A DNA stretch of 64,000 nt, taken from the NCBI RefSeq assembly GCF_021869535.1, contig NW_026262670.1, forward strand, positions 5,332,001-5,396,000, written 5' to 3'. Each line of letters opens with the position of its first letter. The stretch's first letter is position 1. The notes below the pieces were generated by a model. The model saw nothing but the letters and a program-made list of their open reading frames with translations. It did not search any database and was not told the DNA's origin. Position numbers and translations under genes: made by a program. This document shows, in pieces, positions 24,521 to 64,000 of the stretch. This DNA is from Mytilus californianus. Its lineage: Eukaryota.

Positions 24521-24563
24521 TTTGGTGGCTGAATAGCCTCTGCAGACTGTAGTCTGGAACAGT

Positions 24564-25130: not shown

Positions 25131-25173
25131 TTTGAACGATTCAAAATATTATCCTTTACGAAGTTTATACTAC

Positions 25174-25624
25174 AGGGGTAAATTCAGTAAAAAATCTCCC
25201 ATTGACTGTAATGCTAATCTATGTCTTGAATTAAATTTATACCTGATTTACCTTTAGAAATTAGAAAATTTCATATATCATTCATGAAAGTATAAATGTA
25301 GCCCTATCATTTGCAACAATAAAAACATAGGGTCATGCGGCATTTTTGGGCCTTCACATGGCCTTGTTTACAAACACTGTAGATTCGCACTTAATTCCTT
25401 CACTGACCCCCATTACTTTTCAACCCTGTAGTAAAAAAATTTAGTACATTCAGCATTTATTTTTTATTTTTTTTCAACTCTAGTTTTTATCCATCTATCA
25501 AAAAATATTTATTACAAACATTATCTACCAATCAGAAGAGCACATGACTTCAGTTTTATACAGAAAGCTCTCCCCCAAATGGGCGGTCCCTGATGACGTA
25601 TATTTATTTACTGAATTTACCCCT
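25174..25624. mobile_element. MITE-like element A, copy 1 (left end of the array, abuts the H1 5' UTR)
   Basis: TIRs AGGGGTAAATTCAGTAAA / TTTACTGAATTTACCCCT (18 bp, perfect); 451 bp; non-coding. Confidence 0.85.
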
Positions 25625-25627
25625 ATA

Positions 25628-26862
25628 AGGGACTATTTAGTAGCTTTTCCCTCTTTTTTTGTAATAATCATGTAATGTATTCAATTTTCAAGTTCCAGTT
25701 TCAATACAACATTCATAAATGCTGAACTTGTAAAGATAGAGGAAAATTTATACTACAGCCCATACTGCGGCCAATGTATATTTGGTATATAAAGTTGCAT
25801 ATTGACTGTTTGTAAAAGAATGGTGTAAAATACTATGCTTAATAAATATGAATTGTTTTCTGTGTTTGCTTTGACCAGTATTGCAAGTACATCTAGAAAC
25901 TAAAGTCTTAATGTACTCTTAGTTAAATTTTGCCTTATATGGAAGTGTTTGATTAAATACCCTGAAAAGACCACAAAAACACTTTTCAAAGGTTTTTTTA
26001 AGCAGTTTCATACAAAAAAAACCAACAATTATGTTTCATTTTACTAAATTTGTGTTTTAATTACTTGTAAAGTTCACAAAATGTCATTGACAATCACTCT
26101 GCAGAAATTCCTGTTACCCCAACATCAGGATGGTTTCTTCGCCAAAACTAGACAGACAAAACTGAAGTAGAAAAAAATGCCAAATATGAAAAAATAAGAC
26201 TGGGTATGACCAAACTTTGCATTTGGAAGATTAAAGTAACAATTTAGAATATTTAAAAGCAATTATTTAACATAGTAATCCAATTACAAACATTTCAACA
26301 CTAGTTTCATAGATGAAGGGCATGTAATCATAAAAAGTTATCTACAATTTTTTTTAAATAAAGAATCGCAATGCGTTATGTAAAAATAAATGAATATCTT
26401 CATGCGGTCAGATTATTCAAGTGTTAAAATATTTGAAAAGTGCTTATTTACAACTTGTTCTACAACTTAACATGGTGAAACACAGCTAAAAAAAATACAC
26501 TGTCAAAGGGAGGTAATTCTGATTTTCCATATGATTTTACACATAATGAGGAGAAATATGTGCAAAATGTGTTGTAAAATGGGGGGAATATTTATGCCTT
26601 TCATTGATATCATAACTCTCAAGTGTAATTTCTATTGTTTCGTTCAATCTGGACACAAAAACTGATTTTTACCATATACCCCATGCTTCCTCTCACAGTA
26701 CACTCAGTGCATCTTGGATAGCCGAGTTAAACATAGAAATTTGTGTAAAAAACAACTTCAAATGGTTCCAAAATGCTTCCATTGCATTAATATTCACAGG
26801 AAATAAGTTTTGTGATTATTGTGTGGCCTTGGACAAGTACAGTGACAGAATGCATATTTTCC
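25628..26862. repeat. First B monomer (1,235 bp plus the 4-bp junction TATA), a long-monomer satellite unit
   Basis: agggactatttagtag...gaatgcatattttcc is repeated 26 times. No TIRs or ORF found. Confidence 0.95.
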
Positions 26863-26865
26863 TAT

Positions 26866-27316
26866 AGGGGTAAATTCAGTAAAAAATCTCCCATTGACTG
26901 TAATGCTAATCTATGTCTTGAATTAAATTTATACCTGATTTACCTTTAGAAATTAGAAAATTTCATATATCATTCATGAAAGTATAAATGTAGCCCTATC
27001 ATTTGCAACAATAAAAACATAGGGTCATGCGGCATTTTTGGGCCTTCACATGGCCTTGTTTACAAACACTGTAGATTCGCACTTAATTCCTTCACTGACC
27101 CCCATTACTTTTCAACCCTGTAGTAAAAAAATTTAGTACATTCAGCATTTATTTTTTATTTTTTTTCAACTCTAGTTTTTATCCATCTATCAAAAAATAT
27201 TTATTACAAACATTATCTACCAATCAGAAGAGCACATGACTTCAGTTTTATACAGAAAGCTCTCCCCCAAATGGGCGGTCCCTGATGACGTATATTTATT
27301 TACTGAATTTACCCCT
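26866..27316. mobile_element. MITE-like element A, copy 2
   Basis: Same TIRs. The filled site is ccTATAGGGG...CCCCTATAaggg and the empty site is ccTATAaggg. Confidence 0.85.
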
Positions 27317-29796
27317 ATAAGGGACTATTTAGTAGCTTTTCCCTCTTTTTTTGTAATAATCATGTAATGTATTCAATTTTCAAGTTCCAGTTTCAATACA
27401 ACATTCATAAATGCTGAACTTGTAAAGATAGAGGAAAATTTATACTACAGCCCATACTGCGGCCAATGTATATTTGGTATATAAAGTTGCATATTGACTG
27501 TTTGTAAAAGAATGGTGTAAAATACTATGCTTAATAAATATGAATTGTTTTCTGTGTTTGCTTTGACCAGTATTGCAAGTACATCTAGAAACTAAAGTCT
27601 TAATGTACTCTTAGTTAAATTTTGCCTTATATGGAAGTGTTTGATTAAATACCCTGAAAAGACCACAAAAACACTTTTCAAAGGTTTTTTTAAGCAGTTT
27701 CATACAAAAAAAACCAACAATTATGTTTCATTTTACTAAATTTGTGTTTTAATTACTTGTAAAGTTCACAAAATGTCATTGACAATCACTCTGCAGAAAT
27801 TCCTGTTACCCCAACATCAGGATGGTTTCTTCGCCAAAACTAGACAGACAAAACTGAAGTAGAAAAAAATGCCAAATATGAAAAAATAAGACTGGGTATG
27901 ACCAAACTTTGCATTTGGAAGATTAAAGTAACAATTTAGAATATTTAAAAGCAATTATTTAACATAGTAATCCAATTACAAACATTTCAACACTAGTTTC
28001 ATAGATGAAGGGCATGTAATCATAAAAAGTTATCTACAATTTTTTTTAAATAAAGAATCGCAATGCGTTATGTAAAAATAAATGAATATCTTCATGCGGT
28101 CAGATTATTCAAGTGTTAAAATATTTGAAAAGTGCTTATTTACAACTTGTTCTACAACTTAACATGGTGAAACACAGCTAAAAAAAATACACTGTCAAAG
28201 GGAGGTAATTCTGATTTTCCATATGATTTTACACATAATGAGGAGAAATATGTGCAAAATGTGTTGTAAAATGGGGGGAATATTTATGCCTTTCATTGAT
28301 ATCATAACTCTCAAGTGTAATTTCTATTGTTTCGTTCAATCTGGACACAAAAACTGATTTTTACCATATACCCCATGCTTCCTCTCACAGTACACTCAGT
28401 GCATCTTGGATAGCCGAGTTAAACATAGAAATTTGTGTAAAAAACAACTTCAAATGGTTCCAAAATGCTTCCATTGCATTAATATTCACAGGAAATAAGT
28501 TTTGTGATTATTGTGTGGCCTTGGACAAGTACAGTGACAGAATGCATATTTTCCTATAAGGGACTATTTAGTAGCTTTTCCCTCTTTTTTTGTAATAATC
28601 ATGTAATGTATTCAATTTTCAAGTTCCAGTTTCAATACAACATTCATAAATGCTGAACTTGTAAAGATAGAGGAAAATTTATACTACAGCCCATACTGCG
28701 GCCAATGTATATTTGGTATATAAAGTTGCATATTGACTGTTTGTAAAAGAATGGTGTAAAATACTATGCTTAATAAATATGAATTGTTTTCTGTGTTTGC
28801 TTTGACCAGTATTGCAAGTACATCTAGAAACTAAAGTCTTAATGTACTCTTAGTTAAATTTTGCCTTATATGGAAGTGTTTGATTAAATACCCTGAAAAG
28901 ACCACAAAAACACTTTTCAAAGGTTTTTTTAAGCAGTTTCATACAAAAAAAACCAACAATTATGTTTCATTTTACTAAATTTGTGTTTTAATTACTTGTA
29001 AAGTTCACAAAATGTCATTGACAATCACTCTGCAGAAATTCCTGTTACCCCAACATCAGGATGGTTTCTTCGCCAAAACTAGACAGACAAAACTGAAGTA
29101 GAAAAAAATGCCAAATATGAAAAAATAAGACTGGGTATGACCAAACTTTGCATTTGGAAGATTAAAGTAACAATTTAGAATATTTAAAAGCAATTATTTA
29201 ACATAGTAATCCAATTACAAACATTTCAACACTAGTTTCATAGATGAAGGGCATGTAATCATAAAAAGTTATCTACAATTTTTTTTAAATAAAGAATCGC
29301 AATGCGTTATGTAAAAATAAATGAATATCTTCATGCGGTCAGATTATTCAAGTGTTAAAATATTTGAAAAGTGCTTATTTACAACTTGTTCTACAACTTA
29401 ACATGGTGAAACACAGCTAAAAAAAATACACTGTCAAAGGGAGGTAATTCTGATTTTCCATATGATTTTACACATAATGAGGAGAAATATGTGCAAAATG
29501 TGTTGTAAAATGGGGGGAATATTTATGCCTTTCATTGATATCATAACTCTCAAGTGTAATTTCTATTGTTTCGTTCAATCTGGACACAAAAACTGATTTT
29601 TACCATATACCCCATGCTTCCTCTCACAGTACACTCAGTGCATCTTGGATAGCCGAGTTAAACATAGAAATTTGTGTAAAAAACAACTTCAAATGGTTCC
29701 AAAATGCTTCCATTGCATTAATATTCACAGGAAATAAGTTTTGTGATTATTGTGTGGCCTTGGACAAGTACAGTGACAGAATGCATATTTTCCTAT

Positions 29797-30247
29797 AGGG
29801 GTAAATTCAGTAAAAAATCTCCCATTGACTGTAATGCTAATCTATGTCTTGAATTAAATTTATACCTGATTTACCTTTAGAAATTAGAAAATTTCATATA
29901 TCATTCATGAAAGTATAAATGTAGCCCTATCATTTGCAACAATAAAAACATAGGGTCATGCGGCATTTTTGGGCCTTCACATGGCCTTGTTTACAAACAC
30001 TGTAGATTCGCACTTAATTCCTTCACTGACCCCCATTACTTTTCAACCCTGTAGTAAAAAAATTTAGTACATTCAGCATTTATTTTTTATTTTTTTTCAA
30101 CTCTAGTTTTTATCCATCTATCAAAAAATATTTATTACAAACATTATCTACCAATCAGAAGAGCACATGACTTCAGTTTTATACAGAAAGCTCTCCCCCA
30201 AATGGGCGGTCCCTGATGACGTATATTTATTTACTGAATTTACCCCT
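29797..30247. mobile_element. MITE-like element A, copy 3
   Basis: Same TIRs and flanks as copy 2. Confidence 0.85.
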
Positions 30248-31488
30248 ATAAGGGACTATTTAGTAGCTTTTCCCTCTTTTTTTGTAATAATCATGTAATG
30301 TATTCAATTTTCAAGTTCCAGTTTCAATACAACATTCATAAATGCTGAACTTGTAAAGATAGAGGAAAATTTATACTACAGCCCATACTGCGGCCAATGT
30401 ATATTTGGTATATAAAGTTGCATATTGACTGTTTGTAAAAGAATGGTGTAAAATACTATGCTTAATAAATATGAATTGTTTTCTGTGTTTGCTTTGACCA
30501 GTATTGCAAGTACATCTAGAAACTAAAGTCTTAATGTACTCTTAGTTAAATTTTGCCTTATATGGAAGTGTTTGATTAAATACCCTGAAAAGACCACAAA
30601 AACACTTTTCAAAGGTTTTTTTAAGCAGTTTCATACAAAAAAAACCAACAATTATGTTTCATTTTACTAAATTTGTGTTTTAATTACTTGTAAAGTTCAC
30701 AAAATGTCATTGACAATCACTCTGCAGAAATTCCTGTTACCCCAACATCAGGATGGTTTCTTCGCCAAAACTAGACAGACAAAACTGAAGTAGAAAAAAA
30801 TGCCAAATATGAAAAAATAAGACTGGGTATGACCAAACTTTGCATTTGGAAGATTAAAGTAACAATTTAGAATATTTAAAAGCAATTATTTAACATAGTA
30901 ATCCAATTACAAACATTTCAACACTAGTTTCATAGATGAAGGGCATGTAATCATAAAAAGTTATCTACAATTTTTTTTAAATAAAGAATCGCAATGCGTT
31001 ATGTAAAAATAAATGAATATCTTCATGCGGTCAGATTATTCAAGTGTTAAAATATTTGAAAAGTGCTTATTTACAACTTGTTCTACAACTTAACATGGTG
31101 AAACACAGCTAAAAAAAATACACTGTCAAAGGGAGGTAATTCTGATTTTCCATATGATTTTACACATAATGAGGAGAAATATGTGCAAAATGTGTTGTAA
31201 AATGGGGGGAATATTTATGCCTTTCATTGATATCATAACTCTCAAGTGTAATTTCTATTGTTTCGTTCAATCTGGACACAAAAACTGATTTTTACCATAT
31301 ACCCCATGCTTCCTCTCACAGTACACTCAGTGCATCTTGGATAGCCGAGTTAAACATAGAAATTTGTGTAAAAAACAACTTCAAATGGTTCCAAAATGCT
31401 TCCATTGCATTAATATTCACAGGAAATAAGTTTTGTGATTATTGTGTGGCCTTGGACAAGTACAGTGACAGAATGCATATTTTCCTAT

Positions 31489-31939
31489 AGGGGTAAATTC
31501 AGTAAAAAATCTCCCATTGACTGTAATGCTAATCTATGTCTTGAATTAAATTTATACCTGATTTACCTTTAGAAATTAGAAAATTTCATATATCATTCAT
31601 GAAAGTATAAATGTAGCCCTATCATTTGCAACAATAAAAACATAGGGTCATGCGGCATTTTTGGGCCTTCACATGGCCTTGTTTACAAACACTGTAGATT
31701 CGCACTTAATTCCTTCACTGACCCCCATTACTTTTCAACCCTGTAGTAAAAAAATTTAGTACATTCAGCATTTATTTTTTATTTTTTTTCAACTCTAGTT
31801 TTTATCCATCTATCAAAAAATATTTATTACAAACATTATCTACCAATCAGAAGAGCACATGACTTCAGTTTTATACAGAAAGCTCTCCCCCAAATGGGCG
31901 GTCCCTGATGACGTATATTTATTTACTGAATTTACCCCT
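31489..31939. mobile_element. MITE-like element A, copy 4
   Basis: Same TIRs and flanks as copy 2. Confidence 0.85.
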
Positions 31940-34419
31940 ATAAGGGACTATTTAGTAGCTTTTCCCTCTTTTTTTGTAATAATCATGTAATGTATTCAAT
32001 TTTCAAGTTCCAGTTTCAATACAACATTCATAAATGCTGAACTTGTAAAGATAGAGGAAAATTTATACTACAGCCCATACTGCGGCCAATGTATATTTGG
32101 TATATAAAGTTGCATATTGACTGTTTGTAAAAGAATGGTGTAAAATACTATGCTTAATAAATATGAATTGTTTTCTGTGTTTGCTTTGACCAGTATTGCA
32201 AGTACATCTAGAAACTAAAGTCTTAATGTACTCTTAGTTAAATTTTGCCTTATATGGAAGTGTTTGATTAAATACCCTGAAAAGACCACAAAAACACTTT
32301 TCAAAGGTTTTTTTAAGCAGTTTCATACAAAAAAAACCAACAATTATGTTTCATTTTACTAAATTTGTGTTTTAATTACTTGTAAAGTTCACAAAATGTC
32401 ATTGACAATCACTCTGCAGAAATTCCTGTTACCCCAACATCAGGATGGTTTCTTCGCCAAAACTAGACAGACAAAACTGAAGTAGAAAAAAATGCCAAAT
32501 ATGAAAAAATAAGACTGGGTATGACCAAACTTTGCATTTGGAAGATTAAAGTAACAATTTAGAATATTTAAAAGCAATTATTTAACATAGTAATCCAATT
32601 ACAAACATTTCAACACTAGTTTCATAGATGAAGGGCATGTAATCATAAAAAGTTATCTACAATTTTTTTTAAATAAAGAATCGCAATGCGTTATGTAAAA
32701 ATAAATGAATATCTTCATGCGGTCAGATTATTCAAGTGTTAAAATATTTGAAAAGTGCTTATTTACAACTTGTTCTACAACTTAACATGGTGAAACACAG
32801 CTAAAAAAAATACACTGTCAAAGGGAGGTAATTCTGATTTTCCATATGATTTTACACATAATGAGGAGAAATATGTGCAAAATGTGTTGTAAAATGGGGG
32901 GAATATTTATGCCTTTCATTGATATCATAACTCTCAAGTGTAATTTCTATTGTTTCGTTCAATCTGGACACAAAAACTGATTTTTACCATATACCCCATG
33001 CTTCCTCTCACAGTACACTCAGTGCATCTTGGATAGCCGAGTTAAACATAGAAATTTGTGTAAAAAACAACTTCAAATGGTTCCAAAATGCTTCCATTGC
33101 ATTAATATTCACAGGAAATAAGTTTTGTGATTATTGTGTGGCCTTGGACAAGTACAGTGACAGAATGCATATTTTCCTATAAGGGACTATTTAGTAGCTT
33201 TTCCCTCTTTTTTTGTAATAATCATGTAATGTATTCAATTTTCAAGTTCCAGTTTCAATACAACATTCATAAATGCTGAACTTGTAAAGATAGAGGAAAA
33301 TTTATACTACAGCCCATACTGCGGCCAATGTATATTTGGTATATAAAGTTGCATATTGACTGTTTGTAAAAGAATGGTGTAAAATACTATGCTTAATAAA
33401 TATGAATTGTTTTCTGTGTTTGCTTTGACCAGTATTGCAAGTACATCTAGAAACTAAAGTCTTAATGTACTCTTAGTTAAATTTTGCCTTATATGGAAGT
33501 GTTTGATTAAATACCCTGAAAAGACCACAAAAACACTTTTCAAAGGTTTTTTTAAGCAGTTTCATACAAAAAAAACCAACAATTATGTTTCATTTTACTA
33601 AATTTGTGTTTTAATTACTTGTAAAGTTCACAAAATGTCATTGACAATCACTCTGCAGAAATTCCTGTTACCCCAACATCAGGATGGTTTCTTCGCCAAA
33701 ACTAGACAGACAAAACTGAAGTAGAAAAAAATGCCAAATATGAAAAAATAAGACTGGGTATGACCAAACTTTGCATTTGGAAGATTAAAGTAACAATTTA
33801 GAATATTTAAAAGCAATTATTTAACATAGTAATCCAATTACAAACATTTCAACACTAGTTTCATAGATGAAGGGCATGTAATCATAAAAAGTTATCTACA
33901 ATTTTTTTTAAATAAAGAATCGCAATGCGTTATGTAAAAATAAATGAATATCTTCATGCGGTCAGATTATTCAAGTGTTAAAATATTTGAAAAGTGCTTA
34001 TTTACAACTTGTTCTACAACTTAACATGGTGAAACACAGCTAAAAAAAATACACTGTCAAAGGGAGGTAATTCTGATTTTCCATATGATTTTACACATAA
34101 TGAGGAGAAATATGTGCAAAATGTGTTGTAAAATGGGGGGAATATTTATGCCTTTCATTGATATCATAACTCTCAAGTGTAATTTCTATTGTTTCGTTCA
34201 ATCTGGACACAAAAACTGATTTTTACCATATACCCCATGCTTCCTCTCACAGTACACTCAGTGCATCTTGGATAGCCGAGTTAAACATAGAAATTTGTGT
34301 AAAAAACAACTTCAAATGGTTCCAAAATGCTTCCATTGCATTAATATTCACAGGAAATAAGTTTTGTGATTATTGTGTGGCCTTGGACAAGTACAGTGAC
34401 AGAATGCATATTTTCCTAT

Positions 34420-34870
34420 AGGGGTAAATTCAGTAAAAAATCTCCCATTGACTGTAATGCTAATCTATGTCTTGAATTAAATTTATACCTGATTTACCTT
34501 TAGAAATTAGAAAATTTCATATATCATTCATGAAAGTATAAATGTAGCCCTATCATTTGCAACAATAAAAACATAGGGTCATGCGGCATTTTTGGGCCTT
34601 CACATGGCCTTGTTTACAAACACTGTAGATTCGCACTTAATTCCTTCACTGACCCCCATTACTTTTCAACCCTGTAGTAAAAAAATTTAGTACATTCAGC
34701 ATTTATTTTTTATTTTTTTTCAACTCTAGTTTTTATCCATCTATCAAAAAATATTTATTACAAACATTATCTACCAATCAGAAGAGCACATGACTTCAGT
34801 TTTATACAGAAAGCTCTCCCCCAAATGGGCGGTCCCTGATGACGTATATTTATTTACTGAATTTACCCCT
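34420..34870. mobile_element. MITE-like element A, copy 5
   Basis: Same TIRs and flanks as copy 2. Confidence 0.85.
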
Positions 34871-36111
34871 ATAAGGGACTATTTAGTAGCTTTTCCCTCT
34901 TTTTTTGTAATAATCATGTAATGTATTCAATTTTCAAGTTCCAGTTTCAATACAACATTCATAAATGCTGAACTTGTAAAGATAGAGGAAAATTTATACT
35001 ACAGCCCATACTGCGGCCAATGTATATTTGGTATATAAAGTTGCATATTGACTGTTTGTAAAAGAATGGTGTAAAATACTATGCTTAATAAATATGAATT
35101 GTTTTCTGTGTTTGCTTTGACCAGTATTGCAAGTACATCTAGAAACTAAAGTCTTAATGTACTCTTAGTTAAATTTTGCCTTATATGGAAGTGTTTGATT
35201 AAATACCCTGAAAAGACCACAAAAACACTTTTCAAAGGTTTTTTTAAGCAGTTTCATACAAAAAAAACCAACAATTATGTTTCATTTTACTAAATTTGTG
35301 TTTTAATTACTTGTAAAGTTCACAAAATGTCATTGACAATCACTCTGCAGAAATTCCTGTTACCCCAACATCAGGATGGTTTCTTCGCCAAAACTAGACA
35401 GACAAAACTGAAGTAGAAAAAAATGCCAAATATGAAAAAATAAGACTGGGTATGACCAAACTTTGCATTTGGAAGATTAAAGTAACAATTTAGAATATTT
35501 AAAAGCAATTATTTAACATAGTAATCCAATTACAAACATTTCAACACTAGTTTCATAGATGAAGGGCATGTAATCATAAAAAGTTATCTACAATTTTTTT
35601 TAAATAAAGAATCGCAATGCGTTATGTAAAAATAAATGAATATCTTCATGCGGTCAGATTATTCAAGTGTTAAAATATTTGAAAAGTGCTTATTTACAAC
35701 TTGTTCTACAACTTAACATGGTGAAACACAGCTAAAAAAAATACACTGTCAAAGGGAGGTAATTCTGATTTTCCATATGATTTTACACATAATGAGGAGA
35801 AATATGTGCAAAATGTGTTGTAAAATGGGGGGAATATTTATGCCTTTCATTGATATCATAACTCTCAAGTGTAATTTCTATTGTTTCGTTCAATCTGGAC
35901 ACAAAAACTGATTTTTACCATATACCCCATGCTTCCTCTCACAGTACACTCAGTGCATCTTGGATAGCCGAGTTAAACATAGAAATTTGTGTAAAAAACA
36001 ACTTCAAATGGTTCCAAAATGCTTCCATTGCATTAATATTCACAGGAAATAAGTTTTGTGATTATTGTGTGGCCTTGGACAAGTACAGTGACAGAATGCA
36101 TATTTTCCTAT

Positions 36112-36562
36112 AGGGGTAAATTCAGTAAAAAATCTCCCATTGACTGTAATGCTAATCTATGTCTTGAATTAAATTTATACCTGATTTACCTTTAGAAATT
36201 AGAAAATTTCATATATCATTCATGAAAGTATAAATGTAGCCCTATCATTTGCAACAATAAAAACATAGGGTCATGCGGCATTTTTGGGCCTTCACATGGC
36301 CTTGTTTACAAACACTGTAGATTCGCACTTAATTCCTTCACTGACCCCCATTACTTTTCAACCCTGTAGTAAAAAAATTTAGTACATTCAGCATTTATTT
36401 TTTATTTTTTTTCAACTCTAGTTTTTATCCATCTATCAAAAAATATTTATTACAAACATTATCTACCAATCAGAAGAGCACATGACTTCAGTTTTATACA
36501 GAAAGCTCTCCCCCAAATGGGCGGTCCCTGATGACGTATATTTATTTACTGAATTTACCCCT
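36112..36562. mobile_element. MITE-like element A, copy 6
   Basis: Same TIRs and flanks as copy 2. Confidence 0.85.
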
Positions 36563-39500
36563 ATAAGGGACTATTTAGTAGCTTTTCCCTCTTTTTTTGT
36601 AATAATCATGTAATGTATTCAATTTTCAAGTTCCAGTTTCAATACAACATTCATAAATGCTGAACTTGTAAAGATAGAGGAAAATTTATACTACAGCCCA
36701 TACTGCGGCCAATGTATATTTGGTATATAAAGTTGCATATTGACTGTTTGTAAAAGAATGGTGTAAAATACTATGCTTAATAAATATGAATTGTTTTCTG
36801 TGTTTGCTTTGACCAGTATTGCAAGTACATCTAGAAACTAAAGTCTTAATGTACTCTTAGTTAAATTTTGCCTTATATGGAAGTGTTTGATTAAATACCC
36901 TGAAAAGACCACAAAAACACTTTTCAAAGGTTTTTTTAAGCAGTTTCATACAAAAAAAACCAACAATTATGTTTCATTTTACTAAATTTGTGTTTTAATT
37001 ACTTGTAAAGTTCACAAAATGTCATTGACAATCACTCTGCAGAAATTCCTGTTACCCCAACATCAGGATGGTTTCTTCGCCAAAACTAGACAGACAAAAC
37101 TGAAGTAGAAAAAAATGCCAAATATGAAAAAATAAGACTGGGTATGACCAAACTTTGCATTTGGAAGATTAAAGTAACAATTTAGAATATTTAAAAGCAA
37201 TTATTTAACATAGTAATCCAATTACAAACATTTCAACACTAGTTTCATAGATGAAGGGCATGTAATCATAAAAAGTTATCTACAATTTTTTTTAAATAAA
37301 GAATCGCAATGCGTTATGTAAAAATAAATGAATATCTTCATGCGGTCAGATTATTCAAGTGTTAAAATATTTGAAAAGTGCTTATTTACAACTTGTTCTA
37401 CAACTTAACATGGTGAAACACAGCTAAAAAAAATACACTGTCAAAGGGAGGTAATTCTGATTTTCCATATGATTTTACACATAATGAGGAGAAATATGTG
37501 CAAAATGTGTTGTAAAATGGGGGGAATATTTATGCCTTTCATTGATATCATAACTCTCAAGTGTAATTTCTATTGTTTCGTTCAATCTGGACACAAAAAC
37601 TGATTTTTACCATATACCCCATGCTTCCTCTCACAGTACACTCAGTGCATCTTGGATAGCCGAGTTAAACATAGAAATTTGTGTAAAAAACAACTTCAAA
37701 TGGTTCCAAAATGCTTCCATTGCATTAATATTCACAGGAAATAAGTTTTGTGATTATTGTGTGGCCTTGGACAAGTACAGTGACAGAATGCATATTTTCC
37801 TATAAGGGACTATTTAGTAGCTTTTCCCTCTTTTTTTGTAATAATCATGTAATGTATTCAATTTTCAAGTTCCAGTTTCAATACAACATTCATAAATGCT
37901 GAACTTGTAAAGATAGAGGAAAATTTATACTACAGCCCATACTGCGGCCAATGTATATTTGGTATATAAAGTTGCATATTGACTGTTTGTAAAAGAATGG
38001 TGTAAAATACTATGCTTAATAAATATGAATTGTTTTCTGTGTTTGCTTTGACCAGTATTGCAAGTACATCTAGAAACTAAAGTCTTAATGTACTCTTAGT
38101 TAAATTTTGCCTTATATGGAAGTGTTTGATTAAATACCCTGAAAAGACCACAAAAACACTTTTCAAAGGTTTTTTTAAGCAGTTTCATACAAAAAAAACC
38201 AACAATTATGTTTCATTTTACTAAATTTGTGTTTTAATTACTTGTAAAGTTCACAAAATGTCATTGACAATCACTCTGCAGAAATTCCTGTTACCCCAAC
38301 ATCAGGATGGTTTCTTCGCCAAAACTAGACAGACAAAACTGAAGTAGAAAAAAATGCCAAATATGAAAAAATAAGACTGGGTATGACCAAACTTTGCATT
38401 TGGAAGATTAAAGTAACAATTTAGAATATTTAAAAGCAATTATTTAACATAGTAATCCAATTACAAACATTTCAACACTAGTTTCATAGATGAAGGGCAT
38501 GTAATCATAAAAAGTTATCTACAATTTTTTTTAAATAAAGAATCGCAATGCGTTATGTAAAAATAAATGAATATCTTCATGCGGTCAGATTATTCAAGTG
38601 TTAAAATATTTGAAAAGTGCTTATTTACAACTTGTTCTACAACTTAACATGGTGAAACACAGCTAAAAAAAATACACTGTCAAAGGGAGGTAATTCTGAT
38701 TTTCCATATGATTTTACACATAATGAGGAGAAATATGTGCAAAATGTGTTGTAAAATGGGGGGAATATTTATGCCTTTCATTGATATCATAACTCTCAAG
38801 TGTAATTTCTATTGTTTCGTTCAATCTGGACACAAAAACTGATTTTTACCATATACCCCATGCTTCCTCTCACAGTACACTCAGTGCATCTTGGATAGCC
38901 GAGTTAAACATAGAAATTTGTGTAAAAAACAACTTCAAATGGTTCCAAAATGCTTCCATTGCATTAATATTCACAGGAAATAAGTTTTGTGATTATTGTG
39001 TGGCCTTGGACAAGTACAGTGACAGAATGCATATTTTCCTATAAGGGACTATTTAGTAGCTTTTCCCTCTTTTTTTGTAATAATCATGTAATGTATTCAA
39101 TTTTCAAGTTCCAGTTTCAATACAACATTCATAAATGCTGAACTTGTAAAGATAGAGGAAAATTTATACTACAGCCCATACTGCGGCCAATGTATATTTG
39201 GTATATAAAGTTGCATATTGACTGTTTGTAAAAGAATGGTGTAAAATACTATGCTTAATAAATATGAATTGTTTTCTGTGTTTGCTTTGACCAGTATTGC
39301 AAGTACATCTAGAAACTAAAGTCTTAATGTACTCTTAGTTAAATTTTGCCTTATATGGAAGTGTTTGATTAAATACCCTGAAAAGACCACAAAAACACTT
39401 TTCAAAGGTTTTTTTAAGCAGTTTCATACAAAAAAAACCAACAATTATGTTTCATTTTACTAAATTTGTGTTTTAATTACTTGTAAAGTTCACAAAATGT

Positions 39501-42500: not shown

Positions 42501-42759
42501 ATATCATAACTCTCAAGTGTAATTTCTATTGTTTCGTTCAATCTGGACACAAAAACTGATTTTTACCATATACCCCATGCTTCCTCTCACAGTACACTCA
42601 GTGCATCTTGGATAGCCGAGTTAAACATAGAAATTTGTGTAAAAAACAACTTCAAATGGTTCCAAAATGCTTCCATTGCATTAATATTCACAGGAAATAA
42701 GTTTTGTGATTATTGTGTGGCCTTGGACAAGTACAGTGACAGAATGCATATTTTCCTAT

Positions 42760-50766: not shown

Positions 50767-51217
50767 AGGGGTAAATTCAGTAAAAAATCTCCCATTGACT
50801 GTAATGCTAATCTATGTCTTGAATTAAATTTATACCTGATTTACCTTTAGAAATTAGAAAATTTCATATATCATTCATGAAAGTATAAATGTAGCCCTAT
50901 CATTTGCAACAATAAAAACATAGGGTCATGCGGCATTTTTGGGCCTTCACATGGCCTTGTTTACAAACACTGTAGATTCGCACTTAATTCCTTCACTGAC
51001 CCCCATTACTTTTCAACCCTGTAGTAAAAAAATTTAGTACATTCAGCATTTATTTTTTATTTTTTTTCAACTCTAGTTTTTATCCATCTATCAAAAAATA
51101 TTTATTACAAACATTATCTACCAATCAGAAGAGCACATGACTTCAGTTTTATACAGAAAGCTCTCCCCCAAATGGGCGGTCCCTGATGACGTATATTTAT
51201 TTACTGAATTTACCCCT
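50767..51217. mobile_element. MITE-like element A, copy 11
   Basis: Same TIRs and flanks as copy 2. Confidence 0.85.
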
Positions 51218-52458: not shown

Positions 52459-52909
52459 AGGGGTAAATTCAGTAAAAAATCTCCCATTGACTGTAATGCT
52501 AATCTATGTCTTGAATTAAATTTATACCTGATTTACCTTTAGAAATTAGAAAATTTCATATATCATTCATGAAAGTATAAATGTAGCCCTATCATTTGCA
52601 ACAATAAAAACATAGGGTCATGCGGCATTTTTGGGCCTTCACATGGCCTTGTTTACAAACACTGTAGATTCGCACTTAATTCCTTCACTGACCCCCATTA
52701 CTTTTCAACCCTGTAGTAAAAAAATTTAGTACATTCAGCATTTATTTTTTATTTTTTTTCAACTCTAGTTTTTATCCATCTATCAAAAAATATTTATTAC
52801 AAACATTATCTACCAATCAGAAGAGCACATGACTTCAGTTTTATACAGAAAGCTCTCCCCCAAATGGGCGGTCCCTGATGACGTATATTTATTTACTGAA
52901 TTTACCCCT
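52459..52909. mobile_element. MITE-like element A, copy 12
   Basis: Same TIRs and flanks as copy 2. Confidence 0.85.
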
Positions 52910-54150
52910 ATAAGGGACTATTTAGTAGCTTTTCCCTCTTTTTTTGTAATAATCATGTAATGTATTCAATTTTCAAGTTCCAGTTTCAATACAACATTCA
53001 TAAATGCTGAACTTGTAAAGATAGAGGAAAATTTATACTACAGCCCATACTGCGGCCAATGTATATTTGGTATATAAAGTTGCATATTGACTGTTTGTAA
53101 AAGAATGGTGTAAAATACTATGCTTAATAAATATGAATTGTTTTCTGTGTTTGCTTTGACCAGTATTGCAAGTACATCTAGAAACTAAAGTCTTAATGTA
53201 CTCTTAGTTAAATTTTGCCTTATATGGAAGTGTTTGATTAAATACCCTGAAAAGACCACAAAAACACTTTTCAAAGGTTTTTTTAAGCAGTTTCATACAA
53301 AAAAAACCAACAATTATGTTTCATTTTACTAAATTTGTGTTTTAATTACTTGTAAAGTTCACAAAATGTCATTGACAATCACTCTGCAGAAATTCCTGTT
53401 ACCCCAACATCAGGATGGTTTCTTCGCCAAAACTAGACAGACAAAACTGAAGTAGAAAAAAATGCCAAATATGAAAAAATAAGACTGGGTATGACCAAAC
53501 TTTGCATTTGGAAGATTAAAGTAACAATTTAGAATATTTAAAAGCAATTATTTAACATAGTAATCCAATTACAAACATTTCAACACTAGTTTCATAGATG
53601 AAGGGCATGTAATCATAAAAAGTTATCTACAATTTTTTTTAAATAAAGAATCGCAATGCGTTATGTAAAAATAAATGAATATCTTCATGCGGTCAGATTA
53701 TTCAAGTGTTAAAATATTTGAAAAGTGCTTATTTACAACTTGTTCTACAACTTAACATGGTGAAACACAGCTAAAAAAAATACACTGTCAAAGGGAGGTA
53801 ATTCTGATTTTCCATATGATTTTACACATAATGAGGAGAAATATGTGCAAAATGTGTTGTAAAATGGGGGGAATATTTATGCCTTTCATTGATATCATAA
53901 CTCTCAAGTGTAATTTCTATTGTTTCGTTCAATCTGGACACAAAAACTGATTTTTACCATATACCCCATGCTTCCTCTCACAGTACACTCAGTGCATCTT
54001 GGATAGCCGAGTTAAACATAGAAATTTGTGTAAAAAACAACTTCAAATGGTTCCAAAATGCTTCCATTGCATTAATATTCACAGGAAATAAGTTTTGTGA
54101 TTATTGTGTGGCCTTGGACAAGTACAGTGACAGAATGCATATTTTCCTAT

Positions 54151-54601
54151 AGGGGTAAATTCAGTAAAAAATCTCCCATTGACTGTAATGCTAATCTATG
54201 TCTTGAATTAAATTTATACCTGATTTACCTTTAGAAATTAGAAAATTTCATATATCATTCATGAAAGTATAAATGTAGCCCTATCATTTGCAACAATAAA
54301 AACATAGGGTCATGCGGCATTTTTGGGCCTTCACATGGCCTTGTTTACAAACACTGTAGATTCGCACTTAATTCCTTCACTGACCCCCATTACTTTTCAA
54401 CCCTGTAGTAAAAAAATTTAGTACATTCAGCATTTATTTTTTATTTTTTTTCAACTCTAGTTTTTATCCATCTATCAAAAAATATTTATTACAAACATTA
54501 TCTACCAATCAGAAGAGCACATGACTTCAGTTTTATACAGAAAGCTCTCCCCCAAATGGGCGGTCCCTGATGACGTATATTTATTTACTGAATTTACCCC
54601 T
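54151..54601. mobile_element. MITE-like element A, copy 13
   Basis: Same TIRs and flanks as copy 2. Confidence 0.85.
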
Positions 54602-57600
54602 ATAAGGGACTATTTAGTAGCTTTTCCCTCTTTTTTTGTAATAATCATGTAATGTATTCAATTTTCAAGTTCCAGTTTCAATACAACATTCATAAATGCT
54701 GAACTTGTAAAGATAGAGGAAAATTTATACTACAGCCCATACTGCGGCCAATGTATATTTGGTATATAAAGTTGCATATTGACTGTTTGTAAAAGAATGG
54801 TGTAAAATACTATGCTTAATAAATATGAATTGTTTTCTGTGTTTGCTTTGACCAGTATTGCAAGTACATCTAGAAACTAAAGTCTTAATGTACTCTTAGT
54901 TAAATTTTGCCTTATATGGAAGTGTTTGATTAAATACCCTGAAAAGACCACAAAAACACTTTTCAAAGGTTTTTTTAAGCAGTTTCATACAAAAAAAACC
55001 AACAATTATGTTTCATTTTACTAAATTTGTGTTTTAATTACTTGTAAAGTTCACAAAATGTCATTGACAATCACTCTGCAGAAATTCCTGTTACCCCAAC
55101 ATCAGGATGGTTTCTTCGCCAAAACTAGACAGACAAAACTGAAGTAGAAAAAAATGCCAAATATGAAAAAATAAGACTGGGTATGACCAAACTTTGCATT
55201 TGGAAGATTAAAGTAACAATTTAGAATATTTAAAAGCAATTATTTAACATAGTAATCCAATTACAAACATTTCAACACTAGTTTCATAGATGAAGGGCAT
55301 GTAATCATAAAAAGTTATCTACAATTTTTTTTAAATAAAGAATCGCAATGCGTTATGTAAAAATAAATGAATATCTTCATGCGGTCAGATTATTCAAGTG
55401 TTAAAATATTTGAAAAGTGCTTATTTACAACTTGTTCTACAACTTAACATGGTGAAACACAGCTAAAAAAAATACACTGTCAAAGGGAGGTAATTCTGAT
55501 TTTCCATATGATTTTACACATAATGAGGAGAAATATGTGCAAAATGTGTTGTAAAATGGGGGGAATATTTATGCCTTTCATTGATATCATAACTCTCAAG
55601 TGTAATTTCTATTGTTTCGTTCAATCTGGACACAAAAACTGATTTTTACCATATACCCCATGCTTCCTCTCACAGTACACTCAGTGCATCTTGGATAGCC
55701 GAGTTAAACATAGAAATTTGTGTAAAAAACAACTTCAAATGGTTCCAAAATGCTTCCATTGCATTAATATTCACAGGAAATAAGTTTTGTGATTATTGTG
55801 TGGCCTTGGACAAGTACAGTGACAGAATGCATATTTTCCTATAAGGGACTATTTAGTAGCTTTTCCCTCTTTTTTTGTAATAATCATGTAATGTATTCAA
55901 TTTTCAAGTTCCAGTTTCAATACAACATTCATAAATGCTGAACTTGTAAAGATAGAGGAAAATTTATACTACAGCCCATACTGCGGCCAATGTATATTTG
56001 GTATATAAAGTTGCATATTGACTGTTTGTAAAAGAATGGTGTAAAATACTATGCTTAATAAATATGAATTGTTTTCTGTGTTTGCTTTGACCAGTATTGC
56101 AAGTACATCTAGAAACTAAAGTCTTAATGTACTCTTAGTTAAATTTTGCCTTATATGGAAGTGTTTGATTAAATACCCTGAAAAGACCACAAAAACACTT
56201 TTCAAAGGTTTTTTTAAGCAGTTTCATACAAAAAAAACCAACAATTATGTTTCATTTTACTAAATTTGTGTTTTAATTACTTGTAAAGTTCACAAAATGT
56301 CATTGACAATCACTCTGCAGAAATTCCTGTTACCCCAACATCAGGATGGTTTCTTCGCCAAAACTAGACAGACAAAACTGAAGTAGAAAAAAATGCCAAA
56401 TATGAAAAAATAAGACTGGGTATGACCAAACTTTGCATTTGGAAGATTAAAGTAACAATTTAGAATATTTAAAAGCAATTATTTAACATAGTAATCCAAT
56501 TACAAACATTTCAACACTAGTTTCATAGATGAAGGGCATGTAATCATAAAAAGTTATCTACAATTTTTTTTAAATAAAGAATCGCAATGCGTTATGTAAA
56601 AATAAATGAATATCTTCATGCGGTCAGATTATTCAAGTGTTAAAATATTTGAAAAGTGCTTATTTACAACTTGTTCTACAACTTAACATGGTGAAACACA
56701 GCTAAAAAAAATACACTGTCAAAGGGAGGTAATTCTGATTTTCCATATGATTTTACACATAATGAGGAGAAATATGTGCAAAATGTGTTGTAAAATGGGG
56801 GGAATATTTATGCCTTTCATTGATATCATAACTCTCAAGTGTAATTTCTATTGTTTCGTTCAATCTGGACACAAAAACTGATTTTTACCATATACCCCAT
56901 GCTTCCTCTCACAGTACACTCAGTGCATCTTGGATAGCCGAGTTAAACATAGAAATTTGTGTAAAAAACAACTTCAAATGGTTCCAAAATGCTTCCATTG
57001 CATTAATATTCACAGGAAATAAGTTTTGTGATTATTGTGTGGCCTTGGACAAGTACAGTGACAGAATGCATATTTTCCTATAAGGGACTATTTAGTAGCT
57101 TTTCCCTCTTTTTTTGTAATAATCATGTAATGTATTCAATTTTCAAGTTCCAGTTTCAATACAACATTCATAAATGCTGAACTTGTAAAGATAGAGGAAA
57201 ATTTATACTACAGCCCATACTGCGGCCAATGTATATTTGGTATATAAAGTTGCATATTGACTGTTTGTAAAAGAATGGTGTAAAATACTATGCTTAATAA
57301 ATATGAATTGTTTTCTGTGTTTGCTTTGACCAGTATTGCAAGTACATCTAGAAACTAAAGTCTTAATGTACTCTTAGTTAAATTTTGCCTTATATGGAAG
57401 TGTTTGATTAAATACCCTGAAAAGACCACAAAAACACTTTTCAAAGGTTTTTTTAAGCAGTTTCATACAAAAAAAACCAACAATTATGTTTCATTTTACT
57501 AAATTTGTGTTTTAATTACTTGTAAAGTTCACAAAATGTCATTGACAATCACTCTGCAGAAATTCCTGTTACCCCAACATCAGGATGGTTTCTTCGCCAA

Positions 57601-60600
57601 AACTAGACAGACAAAACTGAAGTAGAAAAAAATGCCAAATATGAAAAAATAAGACTGGGTATGACCAAACTTTGCATTTGGAAGATTAAAGTAACAATTT
57701 AGAATATTTAAAAGCAATTATTTAACATAGTAATCCAATTACAAACATTTCAACACTAGTTTCATAGATGAAGGGCATGTAATCATAAAAAGTTATCTAC
57801 AATTTTTTTTAAATAAAGAATCGCAATGCGTTATGTAAAAATAAATGAATATCTTCATGCGGTCAGATTATTCAAGTGTTAAAATATTTGAAAAGTGCTT
57901 ATTTACAACTTGTTCTACAACTTAACATGGTGAAACACAGCTAAAAAAAATACACTGTCAAAGGGAGGTAATTCTGATTTTCCATATGATTTTACACATA
58001 ATGAGGAGAAATATGTGCAAAATGTGTTGTAAAATGGGGGGAATATTTATGCCTTTCATTGATATCATAACTCTCAAGTGTAATTTCTATTGTTTCGTTC
58101 AATCTGGACACAAAAACTGATTTTTACCATATACCCCATGCTTCCTCTCACAGTACACTCAGTGCATCTTGGATAGCCGAGTTAAACATAGAAATTTGTG
58201 TAAAAAACAACTTCAAATGGTTCCAAAATGCTTCCATTGCATTAATATTCACAGGAAATAAGTTTTGTGATTATTGTGTGGCCTTGGACAAGTACAGTGA
58301 CAGAATGCATATTTTCCTATAAGGGACTATTTAGTAGCTTTTCCCTCTTTTTTTGTAATAATCATGTAATGTATTCAATTTTCAAGTTCCAGTTTCAATA
58401 CAACATTCATAAATGCTGAACTTGTAAAGATAGAGGAAAATTTATACTACAGCCCATACTGCGGCCAATGTATATTTGGTATATAAAGTTGCATATTGAC
58501 TGTTTGTAAAAGAATGGTGTAAAATACTATGCTTAATAAATATGAATTGTTTTCTGTGTTTGCTTTGACCAGTATTGCAAGTACATCTAGAAACTAAAGT
58601 CTTAATGTACTCTTAGTTAAATTTTGCCTTATATGGAAGTGTTTGATTAAATACCCTGAAAAGACCACAAAAACACTTTTCAAAGGTTTTTTTAAGCAGT
58701 TTCATACAAAAAAAACCAACAATTATGTTTCATTTTACTAAATTTGTGTTTTAATTACTTGTAAAGTTCACAAAATGTCATTGACAATCACTCTGCAGAA
58801 ATTCCTGTTACCCCAACATCAGGATGGTTTCTTCGCCAAAACTAGACAGACAAAACTGAAGTAGAAAAAAATGCCAAATATGAAAAAATAAGACTGGGTA
58901 TGACCAAACTTTGCATTTGGAAGATTAAAGTAACAATTTAGAATATTTAAAAGCAATTATTTAACATAGTAATCCAATTACAAACATTTCAACACTAGTT
59001 TCATAGATGAAGGGCATGTAATCATAAAAAGTTATCTACAATTTTTTTTAAATAAAGAATCGCAATGCGTTATGTAAAAATAAATGAATATCTTCATGCG
59101 GTCAGATTATTCAAGTGTTAAAATATTTGAAAAGTGCTTATTTACAACTTGTTCTACAACTTAACATGGTGAAACACAGCTAAAAAAAATACACTGTCAA
59201 AGGGAGGTAATTCTGATTTTCCATATGATTTTACACATAATGAGGAGAAATATGTGCAAAATGTGTTGTAAAATGGGGGGAATATTTATGCCTTTCATTG
59301 ATATCATAACTCTCAAGTGTAATTTCTATTGTTTCGTTCAATCTGGACACAAAAACTGATTTTTACCATATACCCCATGCTTCCTCTCACAGTACACTCA
59401 GTGCATCTTGGATAGCCGAGTTAAACATAGAAATTTGTGTAAAAAACAACTTCAAATGGTTCCAAAATGCTTCCATTGCATTAATATTCACAGGAAATAA
59501 GTTTTGTGATTATTGTGTGGCCTTGGACAAGTACAGTGACAGAATGCATATTTTCCTATAAGGGACTATTTAGTAGCTTTTCCCTCTTTTTTTGTAATAA
59601 TCATGTAATGTATTCAATTTTCAAGTTCCAGTTTCAATACAACATTCATAAATGCTGAACTTGTAAAGATAGAGGAAAATTTATACTACAGCCCATACTG
59701 CGGCCAATGTATATTTGGTATATAAAGTTGCATATTGACTGTTTGTAAAAGAATGGTGTAAAATACTATGCTTAATAAATATGAATTGTTTTCTGTGTTT
59801 GCTTTGACCAGTATTGCAAGTACATCTAGAAACTAAAGTCTTAATGTACTCTTAGTTAAATTTTGCCTTATATGGAAGTGTTTGATTAAATACCCTGAAA
59901 AGACCACAAAAACACTTTTCAAAGGTTTTTTTAAGCAGTTTCATACAAAAAAAACCAACAATTATGTTTCATTTTACTAAATTTGTGTTTTAATTACTTG
60001 TAAAGTTCACAAAATGTCATTGACAATCACTCTGCAGAAATTCCTGTTACCCCAACATCAGGATGGTTTCTTCGCCAAAACTAGACAGACAAAACTGAAG
60101 TAGAAAAAAATGCCAAATATGAAAAAATAAGACTGGGTATGACCAAACTTTGCATTTGGAAGATTAAAGTAACAATTTAGAATATTTAAAAGCAATTATT
60201 TAACATAGTAATCCAATTACAAACATTTCAACACTAGTTTCATAGATGAAGGGCATGTAATCATAAAAAGTTATCTACAATTTTTTTTAAATAAAGAATC
60301 GCAATGCGTTATGTAAAAATAAATGAATATCTTCATGCGGTCAGATTATTCAAGTGTTAAAATATTTGAAAAGTGCTTATTTACAACTTGTTCTACAACT
60401 TAACATGGTGAAACACAGCTAAAAAAAATACACTGTCAAAGGGAGGTAATTCTGATTTTCCATATGATTTTACACATAATGAGGAGAAATATGTGCAAAA
60501 TGTGTTGTAAAATGGGGGGAATATTTATGCCTTTCATTGATATCATAACTCTCAAGTGTAATTTCTATTGTTTCGTTCAATCTGGACACAAAAACTGATT

Positions 60601-60798
60601 TTTACCATATACCCCATGCTTCCTCTCACAGTACACTCAGTGCATCTTGGATAGCCGAGTTAAACATAGAAATTTGTGTAAAAAACAACTTCAAATGGTT
60701 CCAAAATGCTTCCATTGCATTAATATTCACAGGAAATAAGTTTTGTGATTATTGTGTGGCCTTGGACAAGTACAGTGACAGAATGCATATTTTCCTAT

Positions 60799-61249
60799 AG
60801 GGGTAAATTCAGTAAAAAATCTCCCATTGACTGTAATGCTAATCTATGTCTTGAATTAAATTTATACCTGATTTACCTTTAGAAATTAGAAAATTTCATA
60901 TATCATTCATGAAAGTATAAATGTAGCCCTATCATTTGCAACAATAAAAACATAGGGTCATGCGGCATTTTTGGGCCTTCACATGGCCTTGTTTACAAAC
61001 ACTGTAGATTCGCACTTAATTCCTTCACTGACCCCCATTACTTTTCAACCCTGTAGTAAAAAAATTTAGTACATTCAGCATTTATTTTTTATTTTTTTTC
61101 AACTCTAGTTTTTATCCATCTATCAAAAAATATTTATTACAAACATTATCTACCAATCAGAAGAGCACATGACTTCAGTTTTATACAGAAAGCTCTCCCC
61201 CAAATGGGCGGTCCCTGATGACGTATATTTATTTACTGAATTTACCCCT
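60799..61249. mobile_element. MITE-like element A, copy 14
   Basis: Same TIRs and flanks as copy 2. Confidence 0.85.
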
Positions 61250-63729
61250 ATAAGGGACTATTTAGTAGCTTTTCCCTCTTTTTTTGTAATAATCATGTAA
61301 TGTATTCAATTTTCAAGTTCCAGTTTCAATACAACATTCATAAATGCTGAACTTGTAAAGATAGAGGAAAATTTATACTACAGCCCATACTGCGGCCAAT
61401 GTATATTTGGTATATAAAGTTGCATATTGACTGTTTGTAAAAGAATGGTGTAAAATACTATGCTTAATAAATATGAATTGTTTTCTGTGTTTGCTTTGAC
61501 CAGTATTGCAAGTACATCTAGAAACTAAAGTCTTAATGTACTCTTAGTTAAATTTTGCCTTATATGGAAGTGTTTGATTAAATACCCTGAAAAGACCACA
61601 AAAACACTTTTCAAAGGTTTTTTTAAGCAGTTTCATACAAAAAAAACCAACAATTATGTTTCATTTTACTAAATTTGTGTTTTAATTACTTGTAAAGTTC
61701 ACAAAATGTCATTGACAATCACTCTGCAGAAATTCCTGTTACCCCAACATCAGGATGGTTTCTTCGCCAAAACTAGACAGACAAAACTGAAGTAGAAAAA
61801 AATGCCAAATATGAAAAAATAAGACTGGGTATGACCAAACTTTGCATTTGGAAGATTAAAGTAACAATTTAGAATATTTAAAAGCAATTATTTAACATAG
61901 TAATCCAATTACAAACATTTCAACACTAGTTTCATAGATGAAGGGCATGTAATCATAAAAAGTTATCTACAATTTTTTTTAAATAAAGAATCGCAATGCG
62001 TTATGTAAAAATAAATGAATATCTTCATGCGGTCAGATTATTCAAGTGTTAAAATATTTGAAAAGTGCTTATTTACAACTTGTTCTACAACTTAACATGG
62101 TGAAACACAGCTAAAAAAAATACACTGTCAAAGGGAGGTAATTCTGATTTTCCATATGATTTTACACATAATGAGGAGAAATATGTGCAAAATGTGTTGT
62201 AAAATGGGGGGAATATTTATGCCTTTCATTGATATCATAACTCTCAAGTGTAATTTCTATTGTTTCGTTCAATCTGGACACAAAAACTGATTTTTACCAT
62301 ATACCCCATGCTTCCTCTCACAGTACACTCAGTGCATCTTGGATAGCCGAGTTAAACATAGAAATTTGTGTAAAAAACAACTTCAAATGGTTCCAAAATG
62401 CTTCCATTGCATTAATATTCACAGGAAATAAGTTTTGTGATTATTGTGTGGCCTTGGACAAGTACAGTGACAGAATGCATATTTTCCTATAAGGGACTAT
62501 TTAGTAGCTTTTCCCTCTTTTTTTGTAATAATCATGTAATGTATTCAATTTTCAAGTTCCAGTTTCAATACAACATTCATAAATGCTGAACTTGTAAAGA
62601 TAGAGGAAAATTTATACTACAGCCCATACTGCGGCCAATGTATATTTGGTATATAAAGTTGCATATTGACTGTTTGTAAAAGAATGGTGTAAAATACTAT
62701 GCTTAATAAATATGAATTGTTTTCTGTGTTTGCTTTGACCAGTATTGCAAGTACATCTAGAAACTAAAGTCTTAATGTACTCTTAGTTAAATTTTGCCTT
62801 ATATGGAAGTGTTTGATTAAATACCCTGAAAAGACCACAAAAACACTTTTCAAAGGTTTTTTTAAGCAGTTTCATACAAAAAAAACCAACAATTATGTTT
62901 CATTTTACTAAATTTGTGTTTTAATTACTTGTAAAGTTCACAAAATGTCATTGACAATCACTCTGCAGAAATTCCTGTTACCCCAACATCAGGATGGTTT
63001 CTTCGCCAAAACTAGACAGACAAAACTGAAGTAGAAAAAAATGCCAAATATGAAAAAATAAGACTGGGTATGACCAAACTTTGCATTTGGAAGATTAAAG
63101 TAACAATTTAGAATATTTAAAAGCAATTATTTAACATAGTAATCCAATTACAAACATTTCAACACTAGTTTCATAGATGAAGGGCATGTAATCATAAAAA
63201 GTTATCTACAATTTTTTTTAAATAAAGAATCGCAATGCGTTATGTAAAAATAAATGAATATCTTCATGCGGTCAGATTATTCAAGTGTTAAAATATTTGA
63301 AAAGTGCTTATTTACAACTTGTTCTACAACTTAACATGGTGAAACACAGCTAAAAAAAATACACTGTCAAAGGGAGGTAATTCTGATTTTCCATATGATT
63401 TTACACATAATGAGGAGAAATATGTGCAAAATGTGTTGTAAAATGGGGGGAATATTTATGCCTTTCATTGATATCATAACTCTCAAGTGTAATTTCTATT
63501 GTTTCGTTCAATCTGGACACAAAAACTGATTTTTACCATATACCCCATGCTTCCTCTCACAGTACACTCAGTGCATCTTGGATAGCCGAGTTAAACATAG
63601 AAATTTGTGTAAAAAACAACTTCAAATGGTTCCAAAATGCTTCCATTGCATTAATATTCACAGGAAATAAGTTTTGTGATTATTGTGTGGCCTTGGACAA
63701 GTACAGTGACAGAATGCATATTTTCCTAT

Positions 63730-64000
63730 AGGGGTAAATTCAGTAAAAAATCTCCCATTGACTGTAATGCTAATCTATGTCTTGAATTAAATTTATACCT
63801 GATTTACCTTTAGAAATTAGAAAATTTCATATATCATTCATGAAAGTATAAATGTAGCCCTATCATTTGCAACAATAAAAACATAGGGTCATGCGGCATT
63901 TTTGGGCCTTCACATGGCCTTGTTTACAAACACTGTAGATTCGCACTTAATTCCTTCACTGACCCCCATTACTTTTCAACCCTGTAGTAAAAAAATTTAG
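63730..64000. mobile_element. MITE-like element A, copy 15 (cut by the window edge)
   Basis: Left TIR and the first 271 bp are present. Confidence 0.8.

Follow-up and report, generated by a model that had tools for sequence, protein, structure and literature searches.

A satellite block bounded by copies of a small inverted-repeat element in a histone H1 cluster of Mytilus californianus, read as a probable macrotransposon-type insertion with later local growth

Eukaryotic macrotransposons, bacterial composite transposons and terminal inverted repeat (TIR) elements that carry satellite DNA are all known already. Macrotransposons of maize consist of two transposons whose outer ends are used together, and they are proved by a matching target duplication that flanks the pair but neither of its members singly (10.1101/082677). 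At the maize White Cap locus a segment carried by a pair of Tam3L elements was transposed and then tandemly amplified through unequal crossing-over (10.1101/082677). The question of how satellites arrive at new chromosomal sites is long-standing and still open, and clean junctions are seldom found. In this study we describe a locus of the mussel Mytilus californianus at which both junctions, the empty site and the target duplication can be read to the base, in an array young enough to show the steps of its growth. The window, meaning the whole stretch of 64,000 nucleotides analyzed (positions 5,332,001 to 5,396,000 of contig NW_026262670.1), carries tandem histone H1 units and, from position 25174 onwards, a block built from two components, a 451-bp element that we call A and a satellite with a period of 1,239 bp that we call B. 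Our preferred reading is that a satellite piece bounded by A was inserted in the manner of a macrotransposon and then expanded in situ, and we give this reading a probability of roughly 0.55.

The first 25,173 nucleotides of the window hold six tandem H1 units on the minus strand, about 4.5 kb each with two of them longer, and each unit contains an open reading frame (ORF) of 188 aa and a histone 3′ stem-loop. In the five intact units the insertion site reads ...tatactac/gaataacg..., with the slash 43 nt upstream of the H1 ATG, and at the same point the sixth unit reads ...tatactac/AGGGGTAAATTCAG.... Comparison of the six units places the end of H1 homology exactly between 25173 and 25174, where the first base of the 18-nt left TIR of A lies. 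An earlier note on this DNA had placed the start of the satellite block on that very base and had the right end of the first A (25624) running into B and not into H1, and both statements are confirmed in the sequence.

The far end lies at the equivalent of window position 76024 and was read in the same assembly (locus L006). The last A copy (L006:14462-14912), 100% identical to the first and in the same orientation, closes there with its right TIR, giving the junction CCCCT/AC/aaataacg..., in which AC is followed by aaataacgatttgaaaataacgcc, the TATA box and the H1 spacer. This is the order that the earlier note had set down beforehand (right TIR of A, AC, the rest of the leader, TATA box, H1 units), the sole change being an adenine for a guanine. 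Onwards to the next H1 site, the right flank forms a complete unit of 4,502 bp, sharing 99.3-99.4% identity with those of the window. Host sequence thus touches the outermost TIR base at both ends of a block that runs from 25174 to the equivalent of 76024, or 50,851 bp, and that contains 22 copies of A and 33 of B from the arithmetic 453a + 1239b - 2, counting 5.9 kb that are unread and must be three A+B units.

The empty site has the dinucleotide AC a single time and the filled site has it on both sides of the block, which the duplication flanks as a whole. With T before and A after it on both sides, the duplication is 2 bp long and can be read as up to 4 bp (TAYA). More than 30 other reference units have G at the first base after the site (20681 and its equivalents), while the next intact unit past the block reads ...ctacAaataacg... 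and has the same A-for-G variant as the right flank, the variant position lying near 10610 on the minus strand of L006. Logan contigs from four sequencing runs (X2, X3, X6 and X9) were compared over 20640-26639, bearing in mind that such contigs lose rare variants, and the adenine variant is the main form in those of X9 and X3 (joint 25174>20682). Because the next intact unit shares its variant with the right flank, the empty site before insertion can be given, by comparison, as ...tatacTACAaataacg.... The empty site is present in more than 30 paralogous H1 units, no H1 sequence has been lost at the target, and the block is a simple insertion flanked by duplicated AC.

A random break in the array would fall on the first base of A with a probability of about 1/1692 per end, and here both ends match and are flanked by a matching dinucleotide. 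Outer termini at both ends, together with the flanking dinucleotide duplication, argue for an insertion of the macrotransposon type, in which an A/B satellite piece with a complete A copy at each end, both in the same direction, would have entered an H1 leader. The transposon ends would have been the left TIR of the first A and the right TIR of the last. Integration would have duplicated 2 bp of the target, possibly up to 4 bp. The arriving piece was probably small, A-B-A or A-B-B-A of 2-3.5 kb, and this founder would then have grown on site to 50.9 kb through unequal exchange. Both termini are exact, and the duplication, the H1 periodicity and the homogeneity of the array are directly observed; from these we infer the action of a transposase and the order of events.

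Set beside the described systems, the locus resembles the Ac/Ds and Tam3L pairs of maize in that two direct TIR copies would act as one large element (10.1101/082677, PMC9910405, PMC4270019), and the two-step history proposed for it, macrotransposition followed by tandem amplification, is that documented for White Cap (10.1101/082677). Unlike those of maize, the end elements of the mussel block are 451 bp long and non-autonomous, the duplication is 2-4 bp where that of maize is 8 bp, and the cargo is a non-coding satellite of which the same element is a regular component. Bacterial composite transposons such as ISApl1-mcr-1-ISApl1 (PMC5821093) likewise have an element copy at each end, use the outer ends and are flanked by a short duplication, but the mussel block sits in a eukaryotic host, has non-coding end elements and contains an interior array with more copies of the end element. 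As in DTC84 of Donax (PMC3879986) and Tetris of Drosophila virilis (PMC4079207), satellite-like repeats would travel with transposon ends and can seed arrays. In those elements, however, the repeats sit between the two arms of a single element, whereas full copies of A both bound and punctuate the mussel array, whose repeat unit of 1,239 bp is larger than A itself. A miniature inverted-repeat transposable element (MITE) that contains tandem repeats, as DTC84 does, was considered for the block and rejected, as complete A copies with both TIRs are present at the block ends and inside the array. What appears to be new, being without description in the literature searched, is that a small non-autonomous element is built at a fixed place into a large satellite monomer and also supplies the end pair that bounds a transposed block, here in a molluscan histone cluster.

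The interior of the block bears on how it reached its present length. The 38,827 bp from 25174 to 64000 can be rebuilt with zero mismatches from one 453-bp block, one 1,239-bp block and a string of presence and absence. The 25 complete B copies of the window show 0 differences from one another, as do its 14 complete A copies, and the far 6 kb of the block contains 1 substitution, so that divergence within the block is near zero against about 0.6% between H1 units. At about 10 positions the letter common to every unit of the block differs from the majority in all four runs, and these private letters indicate that a single minority variant unit gave rise to the block, whose expansion was very recent. 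The absence of divergence and the nested perfect duplications (Table 1) make a small founder with local growth likelier than a single jump of 50 kb, and most of the length of the block was probably gained by local amplification. The internal copy number is given as assembled, the 18-kb perfect duplication being longer than the mean HiFi read, and the boundaries are independent of that count. Of the giant composite moved by outer A ends that the earlier note proposed, the part that stands is a block bounded by two A copies and flanked by a duplication; movement of the composite by a transposase is our interpretation, and displacement of at least 38.8 kb in one step the less likely form of it.

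Several observations weigh against a macrotransposon-type origin. Only 2 bp of the duplication are certain, and a match of that length is weak when taken alone (1 in 16). The 11 B-B junctions in the window that lack A would need a founder already possessing one, or the precise loss of A. The scan of metagenome contigs with the A terminus returned no autonomous element, coding partner or transposase. No donor array was identified in contigs, which drop rare variants, and no second A-bounded block was seen elsewhere, this locus being the only one that could be read. Finally, among the contigs listed none bridges either junction (by at least 31 nt at 25173/25174), a result that speaks neither for nor against the junctions since contigs lose rare variants, and the left junction is known from the HiFi assembly only, a hifiasm primary assembly of M. 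californianus (PMC9710001) made from reads with a mean of 13.4 kb and an N50 of 14 kb (PMC9710001).

The main rival explanation is that a solo A first entered the H1 leader, making the duplication, and that B was brought in later through repair of a break in that A from an A/B array, or through a double exchange in which the two ends paired with different A copies. The final structure would be identical, 451 bp of homology would be available in A, and A/B templates are abundant: in X3 and X6 their depth is about 10 times that of an H1 unit, and in X2 and X9 it is higher still. This route is disfavored only by parsimony, at least two events being needed and both having to be confined to A, by terminal A copies that equal the internal ones, private variants included, with no mosaic boundary, and by the absence of a solo A from the more than 30 H1 units examined. 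We regard it as unlikely, though deserving of more weight than any other alternative.

The homogeneity of the block can also be reconciled with a move through the same pair of ends in which the full array of some 50 kb, or the greater part of it, traveled at once out of an already homogeneous donor array. The same termini and duplication are expected, local homogenization could have rendered the donor uniform, and very large TIR elements are on record, as with Teratorn (PMC10175614). Zero divergence over 38.8 kb and the perfect nested duplications are most simply explained by very recent local growth, and no donor with the private variants of the block was seen, though contigs drop rare variants. 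A single long move is accordingly given a small share of the probability, behind that of the solo A.

An assembly artefact, in which H1 in truth holds a solo A or nothing at all and the assembler threaded a foreign A/B array through it, might be suspected from the 100% identity of the monomers, from the 18-kb perfect duplication that exceeds the mean HiFi read (PMC9710001) and from the missing junction-bridging contig among those listed. Reads of 13-14 kb would, however, cross a solo A of 451 bp many times; the two junctions share a single site, where a duplication is present and the unit length is preserved; and the aperiodic presence and absence of A provides the assembler with anchors. We consider such an error improbable. 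Adjacent deletion, or alternative (one-ended) transposition from a neighboring array, which the earlier note had kept as its other option, fits the left junction taken alone but is contradicted by an H1 sequence that resumes at the same site with a duplication and with nothing lost, leaving it barely credible.

Returning to the macrotransposon-type insertion that we prefer, the properties of A itself are those of a small mobile element. A is short and non-coding (no ORF of at least 50 aa was found in it), it has perfect TIRs with the terminus AGGGGTAAATTCAGTAAA, and it is flanked by a target duplication, with empty and filled forms of its site in B side by side in the array; these are among the features by which MITEs are recognized, many dispersed copies at unrelated sites being another. 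Neither A nor B gave Rfam matches. Within B, A represents a gain of 453 bp, comprising the 451-bp element and a duplicated AT, always at one fixed site, which reads ...cctat/aaggg... when empty and ...cctat/A/at/aaggg... when filled (A here standing for the element). The flanking bases are T in front and A behind, just as in H1, which leaves the same T-A-Y-A ambiguity in the length of the duplication. The contexts in which A was observed number three, namely B, H1 and a short metagenome contig (L011) in which the right end of A is followed by AT and then by non-B DNA. From summed contig depths, which are rough, A is deeper than B in X2 and X9, the runs of organism A, and equal to it in X3 and X6. 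In a relative with 84% identity, conservation is higher at the ends of A than in the interior (93/100 against 277/342 positions, Fisher p=0.003). In these respects A looks like a mobile TIR element whose termini have been kept.

The best-conserved part of A is the right subterminal region, 25540-25624, which has a CCAAT motif, a TGACGT motif and an outward TATA-like run, and which might serve to bind a transposase or act as an outward promoter. Contigs of both runs of organism A also contain a variant of A, altered at 25386-25573, that has 38 other letters in place of 186 nt.

As to the family of A, the ISL2EU/PHIS group duplicates 2 bp, typically AT, prefers AT-rich targets and has termini that start with AG or GG (PMC4482050, PMC4122938); the ISL2EU target is A/AT/T, and its proteins are a THAP-DDE transposase and a YqaJ exonuclease (PMC4482050). 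A resembles this group in its AG/GG-type termini and in its duplications, with AT in B, AC in H1 and AT beside the right end in L011. It differs in a target of T/AY/A where A/AT/T is reported, in having no protein linked to it, and in that a duplication of 3-4 bp (TAYA) is possible, so the group is offered as a lead and not as a classification. Two other assignments were tried and rejected. A hAT reading of the terminus YAGGGG calls for an 8-bp duplication, which is present at neither the B site nor the H1 site, and a TA duplication of the Tc1/mariner type fails because the empty B site is 2 bp longer than it would predict.

B is non-coding (no ORF was found in it), has about 30% G+C and, like the compound A+B, forms head-to-tail arrays in high copy at more than one locus, as befits a satellite, with 33 monomers in this block. 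The array does not simply alternate A and B, since A is present in 15 monomers against 26 phase markers of B in the window. In contigs of X6 a self-closing contig of 1,721 nt has an A+B period of 1,692 nt. Relative to the H1 unit, the depth of A and B is 9-11 times in X3 and X6, more than 15 times in X9 and hundreds of times in X2, again as rough sums over contigs. Sequencing runs with four species labels, and a marine metagenome, contain about three quarters of the words sampled from H1+A+B, and the A/B satellite is abundant and common to related mussels.

Three relevant contigs were returned when metagenome contigs were scanned with the terminus of A. One (L010) has the order A-B-A and both of the same junctions, at identities of 91% for B and 94-96% for A; a second has A at 84% and a B-like sequence at 71-73% identity with the same B/A junction; the third is L011, described above. 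A further match to the terminus (L012) proved to be a bacterial contig with a chance 24-mer and was discarded. That diverged copies share the same junctions shows that the association of A with B is old, that A has long been a part of the B monomer, and that B is not chance cargo.

If the end-pair mechanism is true, the locus offers, for bivalves, a path from transposon to satellite array that can be put to the test; links of this kind are common in the group but mostly indirect. A wider proposal would be that the A/B repeat is a self-dispersing “mobile satellite”, in which, A being built into the monomer, any two A copies of any array form a ready-made macrotransposon and pieces, possibly tens of kilobases long, are pasted into new sites, genes included, and regrow there, giving a general route of spread within and between Mytilus genomes; we hold this extension to be doubtful.

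The insertion separates one H1 gene from its promoter within a tandem histone cluster, showing that such blocks can land in genes. In intact units the TATA box lies about 42-49 nt past the insertion point, which for the last H1 gene ahead of the block places the promoter beyond the inserted DNA, now 50.9 kb away, and this gene is probably silent. It keeps its histone 3′ stem-loop (24480-24525). The 188-aa protein occurs at more than 25 tandem places in JAKFGE010000021.1 (GCA_021869535.1), the contig on which the window lies, by a protein identity look-up. An identical 188-aa protein is encoded in tandem units of Mytilus coruscus (L001, contig CACVKT020003176.1), and neither A nor B was found within 10 kb on either side of the H1 at L001. 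The features of the window are collected in Table 1.

Table 1. Positions in the window of the inserted block, its components and the adjoining H1 features
Feature	Position	Strand	Basis or remark
Last H1 gene ahead of the block	24564..25130	-	Intact 188-aa ORF, protein identical to that of the other units
H1 leader remnant, 43 nt	25131..25173	-	Six-unit comparison
Left AC copy of the target duplication	25172-25173	-	Terminal two bases of the H1 leader remnant
Paralogous empty target site in the neighboring intact H1 unit	20679..20682	.	Unit comparison
Further empty target sites in H1 units of the window	after 524, 5832, 11685, 16177	.	Unit comparison
In-window part of the block	25174..64000	+	26 B and 15 A, of which the final A is truncated at the window end
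First (outer left) A copy	25174..25624	+	451 bp, non-coding
Perfect 18-nt TIRs of A	25174-25191 and 25607-25624		Inverted-repeat comparison
First B monomer, with both flanking AT copies	25625..26865	+	Period comparison; true period 1,239 bp
Example of a B-B junction without A (empty site ...cctat/aaggg...)	28556..28559	+	Array layout
Perfect 4,623-bp period (3 B + 2 A), repeated about threefold at the left end of the array	25174..39043	+	Array string
Perfect tandem duplication, period 18,039 bp (12 B + 7 A)	33176..64000	+	Identical over 9,850 + 2,936 bp

The H1 units have some further peculiarities of their own. The two oversize units, of 5,853 and 5,308 bp, carry inserts of about 1.37 kb (8978-10345) and 0.8 kb (608-1411), the latter starting at a (TAAGA)n run at 605-631, and an inverted-repeat check of the two inserts gave no clear TIRs. 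A spacer segment of about 150 bp that is present in every H1 unit (within 23640-24039, with edges near 23735 and 23888) has an enormous depth in all four runs, with a summed depth of up to 1.6 million in X2 compared with about 450 for the remainder of the unit, and many loose contig ends at both edges. No inverted repeat was found when one was sought in this segment, which is probably a short interspersed repeat and one of the commonest of its kind in the genome. The spacer has, at 24120-24150 and immediately downstream of the last H1 gene, a long C-run followed by an A-run, and reads are seemingly cut there in X2. In the H1 gene beyond the block, on the minus strand of L006, the promoter region diverges from that of all other units about 146 nt upstream of the ATG, after ...gtaaaatccat.

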